Assembly (NCBI RefSeq): GCF_001194135.2
Contig: NC_068995.1
Coordinates: forward strand, 24,196,477-24,260,476
DNA: 64,000 nucleotides
From: Octopus bimaculoides
Lineage: Eukaryota
Reading direction: 5' to 3'
The notes under the pieces were generated by a model that searched no databases, was not told the origin of the DNA, and saw nothing but the letters and a program-made list of their open reading frames with translations. Positions 6,038 through 61,465 of the stretch are shown here, in pieces. The position numbers were made by a program, and so were the translations under genes. How positions within the stretch are numbered: position 1 is the stretch's first letter; every line of letters starts with the position of its first letter.

Positions 6038-6821
6038 GTAATGTATATATATATGTATGTGTGTATATATATATANNNNNNNNNNNNNNNNNNNNNNNNN
6101 NNNNNNNNNNNNNNNNNNNNNNNNNNNNNNNNNNNNNNNNNNNNNNNNNNNNNNNNNNNNNNNNNNNNNNNNNNNNNNNNNNNNNNNNNNNNNNNNNNNN
6201 NNNNNNNNNNNNNNNNNNNNNNNNNNNNNNNNNNNNNNNNNNNNNNNNNNNNNNNNNNNNNNNNNNNNNNNNNNNNNNNNNNNNNNNNNNNNNNNNNNNN
6301 NNNNNNNNNNNNNNNNNNNNNNNNNNNNNNNNNNNNNNNNNNNNNNNNNNNNNNNNNNNNNNNNNNNNNNNNNNNNNNNNNNNNNNNNNNNNNNNNNNNN
6401 NNNNNNNNNNNNNNNNNNNNNNNNNNNNNNNNNNNNNNNNNNNNNNNNNNNNNNNNNNNNNNNNNNNNNNNNNNNNNNNNNNNNNNNNNNNNNNNNNNNN
6501 NNNNNNNNNNNNNNNNNNNNNNNNNNNNNNNNNNNNNNNNNNNNNNNNNNNNNNNNNNNNNNNNNNNNNNNNNNNNNNNNNNNNNNNNNNNNNNNNNNNN
6601 NNNNNNNNNNNNNNNNNNNNNNNNNNNNNNNNNNNNNNNNNNNNNNNNNNNNNNNNNNNNNNNNNNNNNNNNNNNNNNNNNNNNNNNNNNNNNNNNNNNN
6701 NNNNNNNNNNNNNNNNNNNNNNNNNNNNNNNNNNNNNNNNNNNNNNNNNNNNNNNNNNNNNNNNNNNNNNNNNNNNNNNNNNNNNNNNNNNNNNNNNNNN
6801 NTGGTGGTGGTGGTGGTGGTT

Positions 6822-9424: not shown

Positions 9425-10245
9425 ATATAAAGGGTAAATTGTCGCAATTTTATATTTTGAATTTCGCGCATGCGATTGTTTGTTTTTGATTTTGTCGACT
9501 GCACAATATAGTAGGGTCAGTTGGGCAAAAGTTTGGAAACGATATGCTGTACTGCTTGGCATTCGCGCCTTAGGCTCCAATACGAATATTTCAGAGTGTT
9601 TGAGTGTCAATTTTAGGACAGTGCAGTCTGAGGACATTTACTAAGAGTGATTAAAAATCAAGCATCCAGTCAATATCATGGTATCCGGAGTGATCACTAG
9701 TAAATTCATCTTCCCACACGGCTCAGACTCAACACGGAGGCCTACATAAAGTGCCTGGAGGAGATAGTGTTGCCCTGGGTCAAGAGGGTGGCTGCTGGAA
9801 GACTTATGTCTGGCAACAGGACTCTGTACCATGCCACACAAGCAGGAGAGCCCAGTAATGGCTGTCAGACAATTTCTGCGACCACATAACCCCTAACATT
9901 TGGTCAACTAACTCCGCAGACTGCAAGCTCCTTCATTATTATGTGTGACGTGCAGTTTAGCGAGTGACCAACAAAACTCCTTGTAACACCAAAGATTAAT
10001 TGAAGGCAAGGATTATGGCAGCATTCACCACCTTAACCAAGGAGGTCGTCCAGAAGAGTTGCAAGAGATCCCGAAGTCATCTGGAGGCCGTGGTTGAAGC
10101 CAATGGCAATTTTATTTAATAAATTTACTCTTTAGTATTTCAAGATATTTTTATGTACTTCTGGTAAATATATCTGTTAAAATGAGATGTCCGTGCTATT
10201 TTCATATTTGCGTAATTTAGACGACAGTTTATTCACCACATCCTG
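9425..10245 (+). mobile_element. Tc1/mariner DD37D (maT-like) transposon relic, internally deleted
   Basis: WQQDSVPCHTS...IWSTNSADC motifs; 3' TIR ...TTATTCACCACATCCTG followed by TA; same family as 24385-25500. Confidence 0.85.
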
Positions 10246-10249
10246 TATA

Positions 10250-11111
10250 TGTGATCTGATCAATAAATATCCGGAATCTTGGTATAGTAACAAAGTTAAA
10301 GCACACAGAGTGAAGCAACTTGAGATACATTTGACCTTAAATTCTGCTGTACACGCGCACTAAATTTTAACGTTCTAGCTCACTTCTGCTGTTTACAGCA
10401 GTGCTTGAAAGAAAGGTGTGTAGCGCGTGATCGTCTCATCGATCATGACACACAGAAAGTTGAACCGAGGATCTGCATCATTTTTTTTCAAAAGCTTGGC
10501 CATGCCTGCTGAGAGGTTTACGCAAAGGTTTCAGAAAGTTTTCATCGTTCTCGATACAATCAAGATCTTGTGCAACTGAAACCCAAGTAACTTTTTGGTC
10601 AGCTAAAAGCAGTTTTAGCAGAAACTTGGCGGACATGTGTCTCATACCGAAACCTTCAGTGATAATAGAATGAAATGAACCGTAACTAATCTGCACATTC
10701 TCTGATAACTCACGGATGGTGATTCGACGATTTTCTCTCACAGCTGAATGCATATCTGCGATGTTTTTCGCAGTTCTGCTGGTTGCATGTCTCCAAGAAC
10801 GTTTGTCAATATCGACATTTTTCGGCCAACTTGAAAACGCCTGAACCACTCTTACACTTGTGTGCGGCTCATACATTCCTCCCTATACACTTTCTGCAAC
10901 TTTGCGTGGGCCTCTGAGCAGGTATGACCATCACAATTTACTCTGTCATGGTCAATGCGACGATCAAACGCTACACATCTTCCTTTCAAGCACTGCTGTA
11001 AACAGCAGAATAGAGCTAGAACGCTAAAGCTTAGTGAGCATGCGGCTTTACTTTGCGGGCTTTAGCTTTGTTACTATGAGAACAGTCCGGATACTTATTG
11101 ATCAGACCTCG
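10250..11111. mobile_element. Mariner derivative with long inverted arms (two 5' ends), TA-flanked
   Basis: Termini TGTGATCTGATCAATAAATATCCGGA / TCCGGATACTTATTGATCAGACCTCG; minus strand encodes the mariner N-terminus (SRTQV*EWFRRF..RENRRITIRELSE..GMRHMSAKF). Confidence 0.88.
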
Positions 11112-22750: not shown

Positions 22751-23542
22751 ATGTTATCGACAGAATTCGACTTTTACAGTTACACCGCATTGTTCACTTG
22801 TTTATCCTGTTCATGTCACTGTATGTTGCCATTATGCTTAATTCAGTTTACTGTTGTAATACAACAATTACTGCTAAAGCTAATCATCTATTTTTTTCTG
22901 TATGCACACATGCACACACTCACGGGTATATACATACATGCATACATAAATATATATAATTTAGATTCAGTTGAATTAGGTACTTAAATTGAGGCACCTT
23001 GTTAGGACGAACTTATTTGCACACTCAGAAAATATCAGGTGAGTATCAAACTCAACATAGAATTTTTTCCACCCGATATTCATGCAAACTATGCAGATGG
23101 CACTTAGTGTATAAATCCGCTCTTGTTTGTTCAGACATGTACTTTATATAAATCTACTTTCCAAATACTTCCGAAGTGCAGATTCCAGAGTAGATGAGAA
23201 AATATAAATGAGTAACAAAGATGTATATGTGTCAATTCGTTACAGCCGATTCGAGCAATTCCTTTACTTGATCAATGAATGCATTACATCATTACAAAGA
23301 AAACCGTTCTCATCAGTTGACAGCATAGACATCAAGCATAAAGGACAGGTTAGATAATCAAACATATTCATAAATCTATTGATGATATGAATATGTCTAA
23401 ATATCTAACTTGTCCTTTATTCTTGTCCTCTATACGGTCATCTCATGAGAACGGTTTTCTTTGTAATGATATAACGCTTTCATTGTTCAATGAAAGGAAT
23501 CACTCGAAACGGCCGTAATGAATTGAAACTTATATATTTTTG

Positions 23543-23582
<40 letters not shown>

Positions 23583-24384: not shown

Positions 24385-25500
24385 GTGTTGGTGCGGGGAA
24401 TAAATTGTCATCTAAATTACATAAATATGTAAATATCACTGACATCTCATTATAACAGATATATTTACCAAAATTGCATAACAATCTCTTGAAATACTAA
24501 AGGGTAAATTTATTCAATAAGATCGCTATTTGCTTCAACTAAGGCCTCTAGACGACTTCAGAATCACTTGCAACTCTTCTGGACGGTCTCCTTGCTTAAG
24601 TTGGTGAATGCTGCCATAATCCTTGCCTTCAATTAATCTTTGGTGTTACAAGGAGTTTCGTTGGTCTCTCGCTCAACTGCGCCCAACACATAATAATCAG
24701 CGGGACTGCAGTCTGAGGAGTTAGTTGACCAGATGTTAGGGGTGGTGTGGTCGCAGAAATTGTCTGACAATCATGACTGGATTCTCCTGCTTGTGTGACA
24801 TAGTACAGAGTCCTGTTGTCAGACATAGGATCTTCCAGCCGCAACCCTCTTGGCCCTGAGCAGTACTACTTCCCCGAGGCACTTGATGTAGGCCTCCATG
24901 TTGAGACTGAGGACGTGTAGGAAAATAAATGGTGGCATAACGTCGCCATCACTAGTGCTTACTCTAAACACCATGATGTTGACTGGACGTTTGATTTTTA
25001 TCATTCTAGGTACATGTTTTGGGGACACAGCAAGCCAATGGTTGTTCTGTGTGTTAACCATCCTGACAGAAGTTTTTCTCGTCTGAGGAAAAAACAAAAC
25101 ATGTTCGATTGGAGGAAATGCTTGACTTTGTTCAAAAGCTTCGTAGCGCGGTCTTTCCTCTTGTCATTGATGGCTTGGGATAAAAATTGGCTCTTTCTCA
25201 TCTTTATGAGGAATACCGAATGTCTTCATGTACTACCAGCCTGATAAAAAACCCACACAGTCCCATGTTTCTGGGATTGACTTGGAGGGATCGTTGTCAA
25301 TCATGGCCTGGATCTCACCTACAAATTCAGGTGTTCTTTTTTCATCAGAACGCTCAGAGTTTTCCGAGCCGCCGTACCTTCGTAATCACCATTAAACTCA
25401 TCCAACTCTTTCAGAATCCTTTGCACTGTCATTACAGAAAATAAGCTGGTTACCACTCAGATATCTATCAACAGTACCTCGTATTGACATGTGAATTCCG
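24385..25500 (-). mobile_element. Tc1/mariner DD37D (maT-like) transposase pseudogene
   Basis: Minus strand reads QQDSVLCHTSRRIQS*LSDNFCDHTTPNIWSTNSSDCSPADYYV, with 37 residues between the second and third catalytic D. Confidence 0.88.
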
Positions 25501-27543: not shown

Positions 27544-27749
27544 CTAGGCACAAGGACCAAACTTTTTGAGGAGGGGGCCAGTCGATTAGATCGACCCCAG
27601 TACACAACTAGTGCTTAATTTATCGACCCCGAAAGGATAAGAGGCAAAGTCGACCTCGGCAGAATTTGAGCTCAGAACACAAAGACAGGCGAAATACCGC
27701 TAAGCATTTCGCCCGGCGTGCTAACGTTTCTGCCAGCTTGCCGCCCTAA
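27544..27749 (-). mobile_element. SINE family A, near full length
   Basis: Reverse-complement match including the 3' CTTGTGCCTAG tail. Confidence 0.92.
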
Positions 27750-27759
27750 GACATGCTCA

Positions 27760-28830
27760 AATATATTTAAATGATAAACTTCTGGAAAGTTTTACAGATT
27801 TTTACAGTTCCAGTGATGGATTGGATTTGTGGTCTTCGAAATTAGCTTTCTCTTTTCTGGTTTTGAAAAGCCTAATTTCTCCAGATTGGTAATTTAGGCA
27901 GTGTGTTACATATCCCAGGTCCCAATAATTACAGGTATAAATCTGAACTTGTAATCTAGATGGAGTTTCTTCAGATTTCCAATAGTTCAGCATAGACATT
28001 CTCTTTTTCACTGATCTTCAGCTTTATGTTAACATCCGCCGAGAAGCTAATCTCCACAACTGAGCATATTTTCTCTTCTCTGTCCCAAACCATTGCATCA
28101 GGTCTGTTGTACTTACATTTTATTGAGGTCTTCACTGGAACATTCTACCAGTACTCCTTTATATTATGAGTGGCTATGGCTTCTACCATACTGTGGGTTC
28201 TTATTTCTTTGTGTTTGGAGTTATCTTTCTGGCGGATTTCATTATACAGTATCTTAGCTACATCATGTCTCATCAGTAGATAATACCATGATGACATTTT
28301 TGGACAACTGCTCATGATGTGGGTGATATCTTCAGTGTGAACTCCACAAAGTCTGCATCGGTTGTCACATTTTACTGCTTTTCCTGCATCTCTATCCCTT
28401 TTGTGCTTCAGGTACTTGGTCGATATTTCCTGTTCCTGGATTGCAAGCGCATACCCTTCAAAGTGGAAAGTTGTAATCCTGCTGTTGGTCCATAATAGAC
28501 TGCTTTGGTGATCGATGTTACTATCATTTCGGAGTTTTTCTACTAACATATCCATGCATCGTCTTCTGCTCATATAGGCTCATCCTCTCATCTGATAATA
28601 CGTTGCAGTAGAGTCGTGCAACTTCTTTGGGCATGTATTCTAGGTTATCAGACACAGAATGTTGCTCAAGGAGCTGCCTTCCAAGTCTTATGATATTATC
28701 AACCTCATGTATGCAAACTTGGTCAAGAGAAGCACTTCGATAATTGGTAGTTAAAAGATGTTGCTGAAGAGATATGATACGACATTCAAAGGCATTTTAA
28801 ATCGATGTTAAGCCTCTGCTGCTTTGTTTT
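27760..28830 (-). mobile_element. RLE-type (R4/NeSL-like) non-LTR retrotransposon 3' fragment
   Basis: RGL..KTMHG..AIQEQEI..CRLCGVHTEDITHIMSSCP..RHD..YNRPDAMVWD..VVEIS..IPVIIGTLG: CCHC finger plus PD-(D/E)XK endonuclease. Confidence 0.9.
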
Positions 28831-34050: not shown

Positions 34051-34549
34051 ATGTGACTGATGAACGCACACACACTTACATACATACATACCTGCACACA
34101 TGTATATACATATACAAATGCATATATATATATATATATGTAAATATATGTTAGTACATATATATGTACACATAGGTGTATATTAACAAATGCGCAACCT
34201 AAGAAGACTCAACCTAAGAAGCTGCACACAACTCCAAAGTTACACATACAATATATGTGCACACACACATATGTACAAATACAAACAATGCATCACAAGT
34301 AGACACATATGCACGAATATATCCTGTATGCAATACCCACACGCATATCAATCAGATGATTTCATGTACATATTCACACGTACATGCAAATTCACACAGA
34401 TTGATAATATACATCTATACTTACCAGACAGATGCACGAACGCAAACACGCACACATATGCACACAGAAGCCTAACCACTATCACTGCCCACACACATAC
34501 ACATGCACACACTTTCAAGAACCTAATACAAAAAATACAAAAATAGAGC

Positions 34550-34812
34550 ATTATTTACATTCGACGGATATTTTTCCTCTTCTTGTTTGTTGTTAACACC
34601 ACGTTTCGGCTGATATACCCTCCAGCCTTCATCAGGTGTCTTGGGGAAATTTTGAACCTGGGTTCTCATTTCTAAGGTATTTTTCGATGTTGTTGTTATT
34701 GTTATCATTATTATTATTGTTATCATTATTATTATTCAGGTCACTGCTTGGAATCGAACTCAGAATCTTGGGGTTAGTAGCCCGCGCTCTTAACCACTAA
34801 GCCACAGAACTG
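34550..34812 (-). mobile_element. Composite short retroposon (family C): tRNA-like head, (AAT/AAC)n linker, hammerhead-containing body, AATGTAAAT tail
   Basis: Minus strand: TGGCTTAGTGG (A box) and GAGTTCGATTCC (B box) at 34812-34737, microsatellite linker, then a body matching both arms at 40813-41078. Confidence 0.75.
34595..34640 (-). ncRNA. Minimal type I hammerhead ribozyme motif (variant with GUG at the cleavage triplet)
   Basis: GACAC-CUGAUGA-A-GGCUG(loop)CAGCC-GAAAC-GUG-GUGUU; stem I GACAC/GUGUU, 5-bp stem II, palindromic ACGU stem III. Confidence 0.65.
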
Positions 34813-35644
34813 AACAAGGAATAGTATTTTAATATGGGTATAAAATGGTGAGAACCTAAAGATTATATAGCAAAGCTTTGACTCTGGTCGCCCGTGGATG
34901 AGCATTTATACAGCTCTTTTAAATCATATTCATACAATATTGTGTATAGTGTATGTAATATTCAGCAATTAACAGCTAATAATGATGCGTTGAAATAATT
35001 GTACTGATACGCAATAAATCCTGTTCAATCCATCTCGTCATATTATTTTTTTTTATATAATATGTATATTTGCGGATTTCCACATGTATATCCAGTAAGA
35101 GAAGTCCTACTGTATAATAACATTTGGTAGCCGATATCCTGAGTGGAGCTTTGGAAAGCACACTATGAGTTGTTACCTAGATTATCTGTATGTGTGGGAA
35201 TATGTATGTATGGACGCGAACAGTGATGGATGTTTAATTATTTTGGCAAACTTTTGTGGGTACAGTTTGAAAGGACTGTCTCTCAATAGTTTATTAATAA
35301 GTTCCCAAGACTCGGTGGATTAGGGGATTTATCGCTTAAAACCAACACACAAACGAACAAATACGCTCATATATACATGAATACAATATATGTAATAGTA
35401 ACATTTGAACTGTGGGATATCAGAATATGTGACGACGACGTGAATTCCTAAAATGCTTTACAGAAAAAAGGGAGGTAAATTGGTTTGAACAAGTTTCTTC
35501 AGGAAAGTCACCTCTTGCTCTCCAGAATTCTCTTCTTATGATTTACTTATTTCTTTAAAATAATAAAAAATATATAGAAAAGATTATGTCAGACAAATAA
35601 AACGACTTGAAGCTTTACTGATTATATTGTAATGAACCGTACGG

Positions 35645-39662: not shown

Positions 39663-40863
39663 GGTTACATAAACAATTGGTGATACCTATTCTGAATAAT
39701 CGATTTTTTTCTATAACTCCAAGCTTTTCAAGTCTATCCAACAATTGATTTGATTTAACGCCACGATAGGTACAGCTCGCTTCAGTTTAAATACCGGTAC
39801 AGCGTTCTCTTTCGCTTGAAATTTTACTTTTCTCTTGGTGCACCTACCTAATTCTTCAGAAGAAAAAAAGAAAAACAGGAAAAATCTTTTTTAATTTTTT
39901 TAAAATCCTCCGTTACCTTATTTGAACTGGCGTAAGAACCATTTACATTATTACAAAAATATTTATGGTGAGGTCCCATAAATTAAATAGTTCCATCCAG
40001 TCTGTGCCAAATAGATTTGTCGTGTGTTTTAATACAAAAACTTTGGCTTTCAAAGTTTTTCCACAAAATGTCACCACACTTATCATTTCGCCCAAAATTC
40101 GCAATTATTGTGATGTCACTACCTGTGTCCAACTGTAGTCTCGTATTCACATTATTTATTTTTATGGAAACAAATTTTCTTTTTTGAGCCTCGCTTTGCA
40201 TTTGTGTTGACAATACTTTTTTCCTCGAATTTTTTTCGTTCAACCTTTTTTGTTTCACCCAACAATGTGAATTCTTATGTCCGGATTTTCAACCTGCAAA
40301 ACATTTTAGCCTTTTAAAAGGAAATTTTCTTTTAAAATGTATTTCTCTACACCCATAGTATGGTTTCGGTCTTGACTGTTGTTTTTCTTTTTTCTTATCT
40401 CTTATAGGTCGATATCTATGAATATTTGAATAATCTTCTTCAATTTTTTCTGCGTCCTGTCGTAAATTTATAATCCTTCGGCATTCTTCGGCCACTACCT
40501 ATAGAGTTAGTTTCGAATTTTGTCCTAGTTTTGTCAATATCCGAGCCCGTATCTCTGCATCTTTGTTTGCAATTAATCCTTGTTGACATTTGAACATGTC
40601 CGGGGTTAATTTGTTCAGTTTAAATTTTTCGCATTCTCTGTTTACGATTCTAGCATGCGAAATCTTCAGTTTCTTTTATCTTATTTTTCTATTTCTTTTC
40701 TTTCTTTTTTTTTGCAACTTCAAGCACTCCCAGCGAATGTTAAATAATGAACTTCTTTCACTGAATATTTTAGATAACAGGTTAATTGTTCATTATTTAC
40801 ATTGTTTACATTGTTTACATTATTTACATTTGACAGATATTTGTCCTCATCTTGTTTGTTGTT

Positions 40864-40909
40864 AACACAACGTTTCGGCTGATATATCCTCCAGCTTTCA
40901 TCAGGTGTC
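40864..40909 (-). ncRNA. Minimal type I hammerhead motif (GUU triplet)
   Basis: GACAC-CUGAUGA-A-AGCUG(loop)CAGCC-GAAAC-GUU-GUGUU; A.C mismatch at the base of stem II. Confidence 0.62.
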
Positions 40910-40976
40910 TTGGGGAAATTTCGAACCTGGCTTCTCATTCCGAAGGTATGAGAAGCCAGGTTCGAAATTTCCCCAA

Positions 40977-41022
40977 GACACCTGATGAAAGCTGGAGGAT
41001 ATATCAGCCGAAACGTTGTGTT
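40977..41022 (+). ncRNA. Minimal type I hammerhead motif (GUU triplet)
   Basis: Identical to the opposite arm; CTGATGA at 40982-40988, GAAAC at 41010-41014. Confidence 0.62.
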
Positions 41023-41578
41023 AACAACAAACAGAATGAGGACAAATATCCGTCAAATGTAAATTATGTAAATAATGTACATAATTCCTCATCTCTTAAA
41101 TATAGAACAGGTTAATTGTTTCCTCAAAACAAATTTCGAATGGTTTTCTCGACAGGATATAATTACAATACTTTTCATGTTCTGTGGGGGATAATTTCCT
41201 TAAAAGAAGTCGTACCTTCTTTTCTTCCGTCCAGTTTCTACATACTTCCTTGAAGATTCCTTTATACCTTCTGAAGTATGCAGAAAACGTAATCCCTTCT
41301 TCTGCATTGTAAGTAAATTCTTCAATTGAATTAGCAACCCCGTCTGCCGAAAACAAACCTGAAGTGTTTTTGGACGGCAACAATAATTCCAACAATTGTT
41401 GATTTTGATGTTGTTGTAGCTGTAGCTGCCGTTGCAACGGTTGCTGCTATTGCTGTTGTTCTTCTTCTTGTAATTGCCGTTGCAACTGTACCACAGAAGC
41501 TAATAAGTCTTCCATGCTAAGAACGTCCACAATGAGCTTCGAATATCACATCTCTACTATCATACCCTTGAGTTGGGA

Positions 41579-43894: not shown

Positions 43895-44068
43895 AAGTTT
43901 GGTGGGATGGACTAATCGATTACATGCTGATATTTATTTTATCGATTCCCGAAAGAATGAATGGCAAAGTCAACCACGGCGGAATTTGAACTCAGACGGT
44001 AAAGACAGACGAAATGCCGCTAAGCCTTTTGTCCAACGTACTAACGATTTTGCCAGCTCGCTGCCTTG
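43895..44068 (-). mobile_element. SINE family A
   Basis: Reverse-complement match to family A. Confidence 0.85.
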
Positions 44069-45617
44069 ACTTCCACTGAAATATTGAAATCAATAATCTC
44101 TATATCAGAAATAAAGACTGAAAGGAATTGCTTAACAACTGTTCAGAAGATTTTTTCACAGTCGTATCGTATCACTCAGAAAGCATCAGCTAAACAACAG
44201 CTGCAAAGACAAATTCATAAGTGTTCAAGAGAACAAGGTCTTACGTCTCGGAAGTGAGACATTCAAGAAGCCCAGATATCAATGATATTCCACGCCACCA
44301 GAGAAGCCCTGGACTAGTATTCTTAATCAAAGGCAAGAAATGGAAACATTCAGCATACTAAAGTAAAATTATACATGGGTGAGTTTCCTGTAAATACGTT
44401 GATGATAATTTTGAAAAAGAAATATAATCTCCCTTAGACATTGACTATTAAATCAGCTTTTATAATCCTTGAACAGTAGAGAGTAACAAAATACCTGGTG
44501 AAGAAAAGAGACTGTGAAGTACTTAAAAGCCCAAAATGTGACCGAAAATATGTATTGTCTTATATGTTAAAAATATTATTAAAATATAAACAGTTGCCGC
44601 CAGCTTTATCTTCCGATACAGCAAGTTATTTTTGTTAAAACAGTTAACTATCTGCAGGAAAAGTTACACTACTAAAAATAGAGAAAATATTTCTCAAGTT
44701 GAAAATATACATACGTTTCAACGTAAGAAATCTGGAAAATATTTCCATCGAAAAAAAATGCTAAATGTAAATATAACTCGCTTGGTGTACTTGTTTCAGT
44801 TAGAAATGAAGAACTATATAATGTTATCGGAGTAAATTTGTGGAGTGGATATGAAGTTTTTCTTTCAAAATCGAGGAGAAATATACTTGAACGACTACTT
44901 CCGAGAGCTTCTGTATCCAGCTTATGAATTTACTTTTCTAGCCATCATTATTGGTCATATTACTAAATGTATTAGTAATAATCCCGAAAAACTGGGATTA
45001 ACACTCAAAGAATGTAACCAGTTAGCGTGTACTGTTCAAGATTGATCTATAAGAATAAAAGGGAATATATTTAAGGCGTTTTCTAAAATTCAACATGTAT
45101 AACACTTTATTATTGTTGTTATCTAAATCCTAGGTTTGTTCTTTGTTAAAAATTAACAGGGAATATTCAAAATTTTAAAAAAGGAATAACGTACATACAT
45201 GCTTACAGATCCGAACACAATGTATTCTTGTTTGTATATATACATATACAAAGGGAAAAGTATTGACAAGCAGATATACATACACACATATATACATACG
45301 TCATGTGTGTGTATGAGAGAGTGTGTGTGCACGCATGCGTGTGTGTGTGCACGCATGCGTGTGTGTGTGTGTTATGATTAAAGAGAATTTAATTTTGTAA
45401 ATAATTCAGTCTAAAATATATGCTAATGTCAATTGTACACAGATACCATTATTTTCCTAATAACTTTATACTATTCTTTATAAATGTTACACGTTTGATA
45501 ATAATTCTTGATTTTATATTCTGAATAAAACCATTCCGAGCATTCAAATCGAAATATTTCTATACTTTAATTGGCAAAGAAAGAAATACAGAAAACAACA
45601 TAACAAATGAAGTTTAC

Positions 45618-47895: not shown

Positions 47896-47967
47896 CATCT
47901 TCCACCGACTAATCGCCAAACCGTTTCGAGCTCTTTGTGCCCATCCTCAGTGGTGGATACTCCTCCG
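47896..47967 (-). CDS. Candidate 72-nt exon (phase 2-2) of unidentified host gene
   Basis: Acceptor ctactgctatctttag, donor ATG|GTAGGT, GC-rich, only one frame open: GGVSTTEDGHKELETVWRLVGGR. Confidence 0.5.
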
Positions 47968-52176: not shown

Positions 52177-53707
52177 NNNNNNNNNNNNNNNNNNNNNNNN
52201 NNNNNNNNNNNNNNNNNNNNNNNNNNNNNNNNNNNNNNNNNNNNNNNNNNNNNNNNNNNNNNNNNNNNNNNNNNNNNNNNNNNNNNNNNNNNNNNNNNNN
52301 NNNNNNNNNNNNNNNNNNNNNNNNNNNNNNNNNNNNNNNNNNNNNNNNNNNNNNNNNNNNNNNNNNNNNNNNNNNNNNNNNNNNNNNNNNNNNNNNNNNN
52401 NNNNNNNNNNNNNNNNNNNNNNNNNNNNNNNNNNNNNNNNNNNNNNNNNNNNNNNNNNNNNNNNNNNNNNNNNNNNNNNNNNNNNNNNNNNNNNNNNNNN
52501 NNNNNNNNNNNNNNNNNNNNNNNNNNNNNNNNNNNNNNNNNNNNNNNNNNNNNNNNNNNNNNNNNNNNNNNNNNNNNNNNNNNNNNNNNNNNNNNNNNNN
52601 NNNNNNNNNNNNNNNNNNNNNNNNNNNNNNNNNNNNNNNNNNNNNNNNNNNNNNNNNNNNNNNNNNNNNNNNNNNNNNNNNNNNNNNNNNNNNNNNNNNN
52701 NNNNNNNNNNNNNNNNNNNNNNNNNNNNNNNNNNNNNNNNNNNNNNNNNNNNNNNNNNNNNNNNNNNNNNNNNNNNNNNNNNNNNNNNNNNNNNNNNNNN
52801 NNNNNNNNNNNNNNNNNNNNNNNNNNNNNNNNNNNNNNNNNNNNNNNNNNNNNNNNNNNNNNNNNNNNNNNNNNNNNNNNNNNNNNNNNNNNNNNNNNNN
52901 NNNNNNNNNNNNNNNNNNNNNNNNNNNNNNNNNNNNNNNNNNNNNNNNNNNNNNNNNNNNNNNNNNNNNNNNNNNNNNNNNNNNNNNNNNNNNNNNNNNN
53001 NNNNNNNNNNNNNNNNNNNNNNNNNNNNNNNNNNNNNNNATATATATATACATATATATACATGTGTGTGTGTTGTGAGTGTGCGTGTGTGTGCGTGTGC
53101 GTGCGTGTGTGTGCATGTGTAACGCATGTATGGTTGACTGTAAGTTATTTCTTAGTCAAATGACGAGGTTTATTTCAAGAAGGGAATTGAGTAATATCGA
53201 ATGATGGTACAGACAAAATGCTATGAAAATATACAGGCGATAAATCATAAATCCTAGCCATCTGTTTATCATCTCAACAGTTTTGGAATGCTCTTTTTCT
53301 CTGAAGAATTAGATGTGAAATTTAAACTACATTTGGCCAGACAACTCAACTCCGAATGGAAAAGTAATATTTTCAAAACAAAGAATCGTGAAATGTAATA
53401 CATAAACACAAATGTTTAAAAGAAAATGTGAATAAGACACACATTTGGTTTACTCAAAACATGCATACTATAAGAGACAATAACCACTACCGCACTACAA
53501 CCGATACAACTTCAGTAATAACTGCAGTGGCTTCTCTTCTCGGAGATTATCAATCTTATACCTCTTCCTCTCAGGCAATCCCGAATTGCTCACCCTTTAT
53601 CTCGCCATCCTTATCATTTCGAACACCTCATTTCCATTCCCTCATTAACCAGTTACACTCTATCATTACTCCACGTGAGTCGGCTCTCTGAAATTTCCTT
53701 CTAGATG

Positions 53708-53768
<61 letters not shown>

Positions 53769-53807
53769 GTTGTTGTTGTTGTTGTTTTTGTTGTTGTTGT
53801 TGTTGTT

Positions 53808-54025
53808 AAGGAGGCGAGCTGGCAGAATCGTTAATACGCCAGGCAAAATGCTTTGCGGCATTTCGTCCGTCTTTACGTTCTGAGTTCAAATTCCGCCGAG
53901 GTCGACTTTGCCTTTGATCCTTTCGAGGTCGATAAATTAAGTACCAGTAAAAGCTGAAGTCGATGTAATCGACTAGTCCCCTCCCCGCACATTTCAGGCC
54001 TTGTGCCTATAGTAGAATGGATTAT
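53808..54025 (+). mobile_element. SINE family A, full length, between (ATT/GTT)n and (ATT/ATC)n tracts
   Basis: Close match to family A including tail. Confidence 0.92.
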
Positions 54026-54787: not shown

Positions 54788-56225
54788 CTAGTCTTATTTT
54801 TGTCTCGTGCTTTCACTGCACAACTGAGTGCAGTCCTGTATGCCTTGGGTATGTGCTGTGGCTTGTTGTGGTGCTCTTATTTTTACTGTATTGAAAGTGT
54901 TTTACGTAAGATGTGTGCGGTGCCTAGTAATACTATTTTCTGTACATTCTATATACTTGTAAGTCCTGGAGATTTTGTTATTTATTTAGCTGAATGTTTT
55001 GCTTTTTTTTTATTATATCTAATGCAGCTACTATAATAGGAGTTGTTTCTGCTTTTAGGCTCCAGATTCATGTTACCTCTATTTCCAAATCTTTGTATTT
55101 TTAAAGTTTCTCTGTTTCTTTTAGACAAACGTTGTCATCTGTTGGTATCGATATATCGATTAGAAAGCATTTTTCCTTGGTGATCTCTGAGAAGTACATC
55201 TGGCCTATTAACCTTCTCTATGTATTGGCATATCCCAGAATATGGTCACTTTCTAATTCTCTGTGACATTTTCTAGACTGTGCCTATATCATCTTTTTTC
55301 TGTTGATATTCCATAGAATTAGCATAGCTTCAAGTGTATATGGGTTCCAACCCTGTCGTGTCTGTGAATATATTCCTTTTTAGCCAGGACAGGGCAGCCA
55401 GAGACAATATGATTTATTGTTTCTTCTCCATCACCACATATTCTGCAGTTACTTGTTGTACAGCGTGTCCCAAAAGTCGCTGATGGGTTTTAATTCTTAA
55501 TAACTTCCTTAACTTTACTAATAAACGCATGAAATTTTGATACAATATAAAGGACATAATGGAAATTAATATGCACAAGTCAAAATTTGCAACACCTTCT
55601 CTTTCCGATATCCCCACAAGAAAATATCCGAGCTAGTCAAGTCTGGGGAACGTGAAGGCTATTCAAAGTAGACCTCACACATGGTTCCAGCAAGATGCGG
55701 TAACTGCTCATACCGCAAGAGAAACAATGCAGTTGCTACGGCAGTGCTCTGGAGAGAGAATAATCTCCCGCTACGGCAACGTCAACTGGCCTTCACGTTC
55801 CCCAGACTTGGCTAGCCCGGATTTATTCTTGTGGGGATACCTGAAAGAGAGGGTTTACATCAACAAACCGGAGATCCTGGTGCAACTGAAGGAGAACATC
55901 AATCGAGAAATCAGAGAAGTGAGTTTTGAAACTCTTGAGGGTGTTTTGGAAAGAGCAGGGGCGGGCGAACCGGACAATAGCTGCCATTTAAGTGATGTCG
56001 TTTTTCATATGTGATGTAGTGGTGTTGCAAAATTTGATTCGTGCATATTAATTTTCATTATGTCCTTTATGCTGCATCAAAATGTCAAGCATTTATTTTT
56101 AAAGTTAAAGAAGTCATTAAAAATTGAAATACATCAGTGACTTTTGGGTCACCCTGTATTTCTCTTCGTTATATGTTTTTGGTGATTTCCGATGGGAAGG
56201 CTTTGATTTTGTGAGTTACTTGCTG
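54786..56225 (-). mobile_element. R4/Dong-like RLE retrotransposon, 5'-truncated, ending in (TAA)n; split by a DD41D transposon
   Basis: QNQSLPIGNHQKHITKRNT|TSNCRICGDGEETINHIVSGCPVLAKKEYIHRHDRVG..NRPDV..FLIDISIP..KYKDLEIEV..QKIVLLGTAHILRKTL. Confidence 0.9.
55461..56156 (+). mobile_element. Tc1/mariner DD41D (rosa-like) element, internally deleted, TA TSD
   Basis: TIRs CAGCGTGTCCCAAAAGTC / GACTTTTGGGTCACCCTG with long sub-terminal inverted repeats; WFQQDAVTAHT..WPSRSPDLASPDLFLWGYLK with 41 residues between the two D. Confidence 0.92.
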
Positions 56226-56253: not shown

Positions 56254-56286
<33 letters not shown>

Positions 56287-56289
56287 GCT

Positions 56290-56765
56290 AGTGCGTAATA
56301 ATTTAGCATTTTGGGTGTTGTGCCAAGTGCACCAGTTACTAAATGGGTAACTGTTGTCTTGGCCTTCCATAGTCTCCTCAGCTCTCTGTCTAGCTCCTGA
56401 TACATCTCAATGTTTTCAATTTCCTTGGTATCATGGGGGACTGCAAAACCTCTGATCTTACGGTGTTCGTTTCTTTTGTCCTCTATGATCATATCTGATC
56501 TTCCTACATCAAGAGTATGGTCAGTCTCTATGGGGAACAAAGCCTCTAGTTCGTATTCATACCTCTTTTCTGTTCTTATGAAGCCACACACTCCGCGAAC
56601 ATAATGCACGCTTTTAGCTACACAGTTATGTCTATGTTTATATTCCTTTTGTGCTAGTACACTGCACTCACTCAAAAGGTGATTAATACTTTCACCGCGT
56701 TTCTTTTTTTATTGTAGATTTTATATTTGCTGTCTGTTCTAAGGACTGTAGCCATTACCACCAAC
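56290..56765 (-). mobile_element. Second R4/Dong-like RLE retrotransposon 3' fragment
   Basis: ESINHLLSECSVLAQKEYKHRHNCVAK..RSDMIIEDK..FAVPHD..LVTGALG; 3' end abuts a TAA/TGA-type microsatellite. Confidence 0.85.
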
Positions 56766-60972: not shown

Positions 60973-61465
60973 NNNNNNNNNNNNNNNNNNNNNNNNNNNN
61001 NNNNNNNNNNNNNNNNNNNNNNNNNNNNNNNNNNNNNNNNNNNNNNNNNNNNNNNNNNNNNNNNNNNNNNNNNNNNNNNNNNNNNNNNNNNNNNNNNNNN
61101 NNNNNNNNNNNNNNNNNNNNNNNNNNNNNNNNNNNNNNNNNNNNNNNNNNNNNNNNNNNNNNNNNNNNNNNNNNNNNNNNNNNNNNNNNNNNNNNNNNNN
61201 NNNNNNNNNNNNNNNNNNNNNNNNNNNNNNNNNNNNNNNNNNNNNNNNNNNNNNNNNNNNNNNNNNNNNNNNNNNNNNNNNNNNNNNNNNNNNNNNNNNN
61301 NNNNNNNNNNNNNNNNNNNNNNNNNNNNNNNNNNNNNNNNNNNNNNNNNNNNNNNNNNNNNNNNNNNNNNNNNNNNNNNNNNNNNNNNNNNNNNNNNNNN
61401 NNNNNNNNNNNNNNNNNNNNNNNNNNNNNNNNNNNNNNNNNNNNNNNNNNNNNNNNNNNNNNNNN

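Follow-up and report, generated by a model that had tools for sequence, protein, structure and literature searches.

The 64,000-nt stretch of Octopus bimaculoides DNA that we analysed (NC_068995.1, positions 24,196,477 to 24,260,476; hereafter, the window) carries at about 34.6 kb, on its minus strand (34812..34549), a repeat in which a tRNA-like head is followed by an (AAT/AAC)n linker, a body with a hammerhead ribozyme motif, and an AATGTAAAT tail. In our reading, to which we assign a probability of roughly two in three, this repeat is a decayed copy of a ~265-nt octopod short interspersed nuclear element (SINE) that unites a tRNA-derived head with a minimal-hammerhead module of the type known from Penelope-like elements (PLEs), and that is mobilised by PLEs. 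The evidence comes from the recurrence of head and body in independent copies, from the anatomy of a related insertion at 40.9 kb, and from the features and conservation of the hammerhead itself.

An earlier note on this DNA had proposed the order of head, linker, hammerhead body and tail, and every motif that it listed is present on the minus strand. As read from the sequence, the head (34739..34812) comprises an A box TGGCTTAGTGG (34804..34794), a D-arm GCTT/GAGC, an anticodon-like 7-nt loop CTACTAA, a B box GAGTTCGATTCC (34761..34750) and a 3' acceptor-like AGTGACC. It is joined to the body by an A-rich, length-variable (AAT/AAC)n microsatellite (34690..34738, minus strand), 49 nt long in this copy and ~10 to 140 nt in others (52 nt and ~10-35 nt on another count). 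The body, or 3' module, of ~141 nt (34549..34689, minus strand) is shared with two copies at 40.9 kb (91.7% and 87.9% identity by BLASTN) and with copies from other assemblies (nhmmer E=1e-25 to 1e-32 for loci L003, L005, L007 and L009), and it closes with the tail AATGTAAATAATG (34549..34561, minus strand), that is, AATGTAAAT-AATG or 1.5 units of a 9-nt repeat that is present 1.5-4 times in other copies. The element as a whole, ~265 nt, is non-coding. Its minimal type I hammerhead motif (34595..34640, minus strand) reads GACAC-CTGATGA-A-GGCTGG-AGGGTATAT-CAGCC-GAAAC-GTG-GTGTT, with GACAC/GUGUU as helix I, the core CUGAUGA, an unpaired A, GGCUG(G)/(U)CAGCC as stem II, GAAA, and ACGU as helix III. 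As had been claimed, stem II is perfectly paired (GGCUG/CAGCC) and position 17 (34600) is a G; because G17 violates the H17 rule, this copy is predicted to be dead and incapable of cleavage.

The body is open in one frame on each strand, so its open reading frames (ORFs), although not those of a gene, could be used as protein queries. A 93-aa ORF spanning the pair of copies at 40.9 kb (window:40834-41112:+), searched against a library of 1.84 billion proteins, returned 64 matches at E<=0.001, all of them short unnamed ORFs, which are spurious gene calls over relatives of the element. One of these, UniRef A0A0L8FV75 from O. bimaculoides, was the sole match in a word-indexed search with the body ORF. 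Logan contigs from SRR11869384-94 hold what we call family A, 77-90% identical to the window copies, and the ENA assembly ERZ21867824 holds a diverged sister family, B. In all, ~170 kb of sequence was examined, consisting of the window and ~106 kb of related loci. A protein search across the head-body junction gave no match. Exact-pattern scans for the hammerhead were also negative in collections of metagenomes and of viral and prokaryotic genomes, where an animal repeat is not expected.

Head, linker, 3' module and (AATGTAAAT)n tail are colinear in independent copies, and the family is a retroposon. Full head-linker-body copies form both arms of locus L013: The right arm (~212-450) runs GGGCATTGTGATTAAGAATACAAGCTACTAACCCAAAGATTCTGAGTTTGATTCTAGGCAGTGACC-TGAATAATAACATAGGAAAAATGCCTAAGGAATGAGAACCC... 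and then into body and tail, and the left arm, inverted and upstream, has a head of its own. The contig of L018 begins within the head (AAGAGCACAGGCTACTAACCCCAAGATACTCAGTTCAATTCCAAGC...) and proceeds through a 35-nt A-rich linker to the body, and those of L009 and L010 begin within the linker. In alignment, the window copy and the two copies in L013 agree in their head-linker junction, CAGTGACC|TGAATAATA, and the linker-body junction AACATCG.AAAAATACCTTAG.AATGAGAAC (also written ...AACAT(C)G(G)AAAAATRCCTWAGGAATGAG...) is common to the window copy, L005, L009, L013 and L018. The heads of L013, L014 and L018 are 84-92% identical to the window head, of which a 19-mer occurs only once in the window. 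Wherever the linker is seen in other loci (L005, L007, L009, L010, L013 and L018), its position is taken by an A-rich simple repeat of another length; because of this variation, the 49-nt linker is best understood as the microsatellite expansion of a short A-rich spacer. We also considered the (AAC)n(AAT)n stretch as the tail of a separate SINE and rejected this, since the linker junctions are common to independent copies. A head lacking the body was not encountered in the ~170 kb examined, a sample that is small and partly ascertained through the body.

The pair of copies at 40.9 kb establishes that the body is mobile and defines the limits of its insertion. These copies had been described as carrying GUU together with a stem II mismatch, and both do have GTT and an A10.1.C11.1 mismatch in stem II, but they prove to be a truncated inverted pair rather than full SINEs. 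The left arm (40791..40949, minus strand; hammerhead 40864-40909) has its tail, (AATGTAAAY)4, at its outer end; the right arm (40948..41105, plus strand; hammerhead 40977-41022) ends in a tail followed by a 29-nt extension. The arms are thus joined 5'-to-5' with their (AATGTAAAY)n tails outward, form an inverted repeat (40801-40941 and 40945-41085, 94% complementary), and are without a head because they are 5'-truncated. On either side stands one copy of a perfect 15-nt direct repeat (AACAGGTTAATTGTT at 40776..40790, and its counterpart at 41106..41120), amounting to a target-site duplication of 12-15 bp, with the first 3 nt (AAC) of the right copy possibly being the end of the element; other copies end in ...TATAGAAC. 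When the insert and one repeat are removed in silico, the minus-strand gag-protease frame is restored (...FEICFEETINLLSKIFSERSSLFNIRWECL...LQLDTGSD) and aligns without gaps over the join with the DUF7083 proteins LOC106874916 (O. bimaculoides) and LOC115224914 (O. sinensis). It is this duplication and this restored frame that show the body to be mobile. The target itself is the remnant of a long terminal repeat (LTR) retrotransposon with gag (DUF7083) and aspartic protease (LQLDTGSD), interrupted by internal stops, at ~39986-41446 on the minus strand; two octopod loci that were reached through a homologue of this gag (40 kb) contain no copy of the element. Taken with the order and junctions that recur in L013 (twice) and L018, which contradict chance adjacency, the insertion sustains the claim of a single retroposon family.

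The 29-nt extension GTACATAATTCCTCATCTCTTAAATATAG (41077-41105), also designated by its stretch GTACATAATTCCTCATCTCTTAAATATAGAAC, is absent from the left arm. We rejected the possibility that these 29 nt are simply flanking DNA, since they recur at both ends of L003, in a fragment of L005 that is inverted and in ORF P0005 of O. bimaculoides (...NVHNSSSLKYRT), and they are counted here with the 3' module. Pairs inverted 5'-to-5' are present in the window, L003, L005, L008, L013 and L019, and in 24 of 61 matching ORFs, always in -+ order, although a query that is itself an inverted pair favours the retrieval of such pairs; tandem arrangements occur in 15 ORFs, mostly of family B. Insertions of PLEs are 5'-truncated, are often abutted at the 5' end by an inverted, 5'-truncated copy, and often bear a 30-40-bp extension at one end only, features that are stated to be absent from the target-primed reverse transcription of long interspersed nuclear elements (LINEs) (PMC8557442; PMC8969392). 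The 40.9-kb insertion displays all three: 5' truncation, an inverted partner and a one-end extension.

The majority consensus of 12 copies, GACAC-CUGAUGA-A-GGCUGG-AGGGUAUAU-CAGCC-GAAAC-GUU-GUGUU, has an intact core with a cleavable U17, which bears out the expectation that a consensus would be whole. The catalytic core C3U4G5A6N7G8A9...G12A13A14...U16.1-H17 is shared by this consensus, the two copies at 40.9 kb and family B. A strict descriptor (the conserved boxes, stem II of at least 4 bp, an ACGT helix III, and at least 4 of 5 pairs in helix I) finds one match in the window and none in 300 composition-preserving shuffles; a relaxed descriptor is expected to match 0.09 times per window, and the box pattern alone matches four times against 0.27 expected. 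The hammerhead motif is therefore more than chance, and the minimum-energy fold of the 58-nt segment contains helices I and II (z=-2.35).

The motif had been taken for a PLE-type minimal type I hammerhead, and its details agree with that assignment. In the minimal hammerheads of metazoan PLEs a base intervenes between 9 and 10.1, G10.1-C11.1 is a conserved pair, the 15.2-16.2 pair is palindromic and helix I has 4-5 bp; most are solo copies, with opposite-strand pairs 100-700 bp apart. These features emerged outside the search descriptor of Cervera and de la Pena (PMC4209133). The octopus consensus, with its 5-bp helix I and loopless palindromic ACGU helix III, shares every one of these emergent features; the 40.9-kb copies differ in having A10.1.

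Family B offers a view of the same module after considerable divergence. Its hammerheads (L008, 10127-10172 and 10294-10339) read AACAC-CUGAAGA-A-GGCCGG-AGGACAUAU-CGGCC-GAAAC-GUU-GUGGA and are 83% identical to the family A consensus over the 46-nt hammerhead, as against 59% in the rest of the module. All differences between the two hammerheads fall at permitted sites, namely N7, loop 2, distal helix I and the 10.4-11.4 pair, and in this last the U-A of family A corresponds to C-G in family B, both sides having changed. In the translations, from among the 64 spurious ORFs, the same pair appears as Trp/Gln in 10 cases and Arg/Arg in 8, against four mismatched Arg/Gln and four wobble Trp/Arg. Across the alignment, the proposed pairs hold in 85.5% of cells, compared with 24-47% when the partners are slid. 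Because the differences lie at permitted sites and include a compensatory change, albeit a single event, the comparison speaks for selection acting on the fold of the ribozyme in the source-copy lineages. For the stem covariation that the earlier note had sought, the evidence is one compensatory pair (U-A to C-G), and the pairing is no better than in column shuffles, a control that carries little information here.

Family B occurs as near-perfect hairpin pairs (L008 10087-10420, L019 10060-10470) and as long tandem arrays of up to ~17-20 units in one ORF (proteins P0007, P0013 and P0027). A full family B copy in L019 has an A-box-like TGGCGTAATGG and a B-box-like AGATTCAATCC in its 5' region, with no Rfam tRNA match.

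How might such an element propagate? In the head, the A box fits at 11 of 11 positions and the B box at 10 of 11, with a spacing of ~32 nt; the sense strand of the consensus has no TTTT, and at the 34.6-kb copy a T5 run lies within 10 nt past the tail. To judge from boxes, spacing and T-runs, RNA polymerase III (Pol III) would transcribe source copies from the head as far as a flanking T-run. The 3' module would then mimic the 3' end of a PLE, such that the reverse transcriptase and GIY-YIG endonuclease of the PLE insert copies of it elsewhere. Having no stable helix III, the hammerhead would cleave only when two units pair through ACGU, either between two transcripts or between tandem units, and it may be kept in source copies for RNA processing or as a structure recognised by the reverse transcriptase. 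Cleavage after GUU would detach the last ~60 nt from the head, which in a single-unit transcript would be self-defeating. The hammerhead is therefore no less likely to serve in the processing of multimeric or read-through RNA, as has been proposed for Sm-alpha in Schistosoma (PMC6765202), or as a structure for recognition by the reverse transcriptase, than to cleave obligatorily. The published activity of minimal hammerheads in vitro is low and requires dimers (PMC4209133; PMC6765202).

Several observations weigh against this reading. The sample of copies is small and biased, its loci having been retrieved through body-derived ORFs, and it includes copies in which the head is reduced to a remnant (L005) or does not appear in the 35 nt visible (L007); these contigs give no tRNA-like match. 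As a tRNA, the window head scores 23.7 bits against the Rfam model (E=0.015 on 551 nt), short of the gathering score of 29, the L013 heads give no tRNA match, and ARAGORN calls no tRNA in the head or in any other tested sequence. Both L013 heads (143-302) were copied although the same 7 nt (CTTAGTG) are missing from their A box, which implies either that the A box was already damaged in a source RNA or that 7 nt were duplicated in the lineage of the window copy. For the 34.6-kb copy itself no target-site duplication was established, the best repeat being one of 9 nt that 35 of 500 shuffles also reach. Individual copies are mostly broken, and at differing core positions, as for neutral decay after insertion; the covariation amounts to one pair and, with little variation in the columns, does not exceed that of column shuffles. 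The covariance-model check proposed earlier (Rfam Hammerhead_1) came out negative, in that the Rfam hammerhead models gave no match at E<=10 on 34400-34950 or on an intact family B copy; these models presumably expect a helix III hairpin, which is missing from minimal hammerheads. No Rfam family at all reaches its gathering score in the window. Tails built from a 9-nt repeat are likewise typical of LINE and SINE pairs of the CR1/L2 type. Finally, no PLE reading frame (a PLE-type reverse transcriptase with YxDD, or GIY-YIG) was found in the window or in the ~106 kb of related loci, and Pfam searches of ten window ORFs returned a zf-RVT and a helix-turn-helix domain only. Our case for PLE dependence is therefore drawn from the insertion anatomy and the hammerhead type, and the PLE partner could lie elsewhere in the genome.

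Of the alternatives, the one that survives best, though we think it unlikely, is that the element is a non-LTR retrozyme or a non-autonomous PLE derivative, expressed from tandem arrays or by read-through and spreading as RNA that its hammerhead has processed and that may be circular, with the tRNA-like piece as a captured passenger rather than a working promoter. Relatives do form tandem arrays (P0007, P0010, P0013 and P0027), the source RNA of L013 may have had a damaged A box, the derivation of retrozymes from PLE terminal repeats has been proposed in the literature, and PLEs can carry host sequences (PMC8557442). Against this, the head stands at the 5' end in all full copies, its A and B boxes are correctly spaced and no T4 run is found inside, and the copies in the window and in the octopod loci are dispersed as singles or inverted pairs, not as tandem arrays.

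Slightly less probable again is a family mobilised by a LINE, for example of the CR1/L2 type, in which inverted pairs arise by twin priming and the motif is a protein-binding stem-loop instead of a ribozyme. The (AATGTAAAT)n tail, the lack of a match to the Rfam hammerhead models, and the presence in window and loci of LINE reverse transcriptase remnants where no PLE frame was seen are all in keeping with it. What it leaves unaccounted for is a motif with every sequence feature of the PLE minimal hammerheads, among them core bases for which a plain stem-loop would have no use, as well as the 29-nt extension on one side only and the frequency of complete pairs joined 5'-to-5', which are PLE traits stated to be foreign to the target-primed reverse transcription of LINEs (PMC8557442). 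That a truncated PLE end and a tRNA-SINE fragment unrelated to it merely came to abut in an (AAT)n microsatellite is very improbable: Although both 40.9-kb copies and the L003 arms are without a head, L005 and L007 show no clear one, and PLEs are reported to favour microsatellite targets (PMC8557442), 5' truncation explains headless copies, and the head and both junctions are seen again twice in L013 and once in L018, loci from different sequencing runs whose flanks are unlike those of the window copy, so that chance juxtaposition is excluded by colinearity.

On the preferred reading, a PLE-mobilised SINE, the closest architectural parallel is that suggested in the earlier note, Sm-alpha and Sj-alpha of Schistosoma (Ferbeyre 1998; Laha 2000; as summarised in PMC6765202). 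In that summary these are likewise short non-coding retroposons in which a type I hammerhead comes after a promoter of Pol III type, present in many decayed copies, and with cleavage thought to require more than one unit. The analogy holds for architecture only, across different phyla: As summarised there, Sm-alpha has a canonical hammerhead with a helix III loop, cleaves efficiently and is often tandem, whereas the octopus element has a loopless minimal hammerhead, a recognisable tRNA-like head, a microsatellite linker, a 9-nt tail and PLE-style inverted pairs. With the minimal hammerheads of PLEs (PMC4209133; Lunse et al. 2017, as cited in PMC6765202) it shares the core, the unpaired base, G10.1-C11.1, helix I and helix III, as well as the prevalence of solo copies and of opposite-strand pairs 100-700 bp apart (PMC4209133). 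Those hammerheads have been read as truncated PLEs; the octopus module is instead fused 3' of a tRNA-like head in a distinct short family.

The animal non-LTR retrozymes are also non-autonomous and hammerhead-bearing, with PLE machinery proposed for their mobility (PMC7229834; bioRxiv 10.64898/2026.07.22.740005), and the sister family in ERZ21867824 forms tandem arrays as they do. Retrozymes are, however, defined as ~170-400-nt tandem repeats with canonical type I hammerheads and circular RNA, whereas the octopus copies are dispersed, with no tandem copies in the window, and have minimal hammerheads and a tRNA-like head; neither PMC7229834 nor the bioRxiv report mentions a tRNA or a Pol III promoter. 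Among octopod SINEs, OK, OR1 and OR2 are also tRNA-derived (Ohshima and Okada 1994, as cited in PMC4824008 and PMC4758252). These citing papers name OR1 or OR2 as a CORE-SINE and disagree on which; in the octopus element no CORE domain is evident by eye, judged without a CORE sequence for comparison. The element may be identical with OK, OR1 or OR2, which are known here by description only.

The publications consulted on PLE hammerheads, on animal retrozymes and their proposed PLE origin, and on PLE structure make no mention of a tRNA or Pol III head on such modules or of octopus, and the giant-squid genome paper reports Rfam Hammerhead_1 matches, tRNA-derived SINEs and Penelope elements separately, without linking them. 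A full-text literature search on SINE, Penelope, tRNA and hammerhead did not find the combination, Repbase, Dfam and the 1994 octopus SINE sequences being outside this comparison, and the element may have been described before as an unclassified repeat. What appears to be new, as judged from sequence, is the joining of a tRNA-like head to a PLE-type minimal hammerhead; the Sm-alpha-like architecture and the PLE minimal hammerhead are each known. A bolder proposal, which we hold tentatively and consider somewhat more apt to fail than to stand, is that this is the first recognised class of SINEs to parasitise PLEs, with a Pol III head and a selected minimal hammerhead, distributed cephalopod-wide as family A in Octopus and, in another assembly, family B with its tandem, retrozyme-like arrays.

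If this is so, then solo PLE hammerheads, SINEs of the Sm-alpha type and animal retrozymes would form one continuum of PLE-dependent non-autonomous elements, a PLE-dependent class would have to be added to SINE taxonomy, and some of the minimal hammerheads that stand "solo" by the thousands in invertebrate genomes would be SINE copies rather than truncated PLEs. The role of the hammerhead in PLEs is unsettled: It cleaves weakly in vitro, some clades are without it, and it has even been suggested that hammerheads are parasites of PLEs (PMC8557442). A 265-nt, presumably Pol III-driven element that retains only the terminal module of a PLE would be a minimal natural substrate with which to study recognition by the PLE machinery and the need for the ribozyme in mobilisation.

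A second 5'-to-5' inverted pair lies in the window at 23202-23372 and 23386-23556 (171 nt, 82%, 13 nt apart). Near the outer end of each arm is a hammerhead-like signature (CTGATGAG...CTCGAAAC-GGCC-GTA) with one box mutated per arm; there is no Rfam hammerhead match at E<=10, and the right end adjoins (TA)n and an assembly gap. This pair may represent a different PLE-type family. At 47905-47950 on the minus strand, a match to the relaxed descriptor (CTGAGGA-T-GGGC..GCTC-GAAAC-GG), with a non-palindromic helix III, could be a decayed motif or, given the 0.09 expected per window, chance. Locus L001 (O. sinensis CM016860.1) has at ~20401 on the minus strand what looks like a canonical type I hammerhead, ACACG-CTGACGAG-AGGTCAATATCT-CGAAAC-TCGA-GTC-CGTGT, in which helix III is short and the UCGA loop palindromic; it scores below the Rfam gathering threshold.

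The window head may resemble a tRNA-Arg type in its variable loop and T arm. An abundant SINE-like family of ~170 nt (119-292, 2094-2267, 27580-27745, 43950-44114 and 53761-53948) has a T-arm-like GTTCTGAGTTCAAATTCC and a head otherwise unrelated to that of the studied element; its copy at 53.7 kb directly adjoins an (ATT)n(GTT)n array. The longest inverted repeats in the window (I1-I3 and I5, including 6076-6801, 52177-53039 and 60973-61465) were rejected as artefacts of N runs, that is, gaps flanked by TA/TG microsatellites. C-terminal fragments of LINE reverse transcriptases (zf-RVT) lie at 28148-28579 and 56286-56708, both on the minus strand, and fragments of mariner-like transposases at 10481-10882 (minus), 24822-25163 (minus) and 55637-56011 (plus). 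A 436-nt inverted repeat (9805-10240 and 24392-24827) adjoins two of the mariner-like ORF pieces and may represent two mariner copies.

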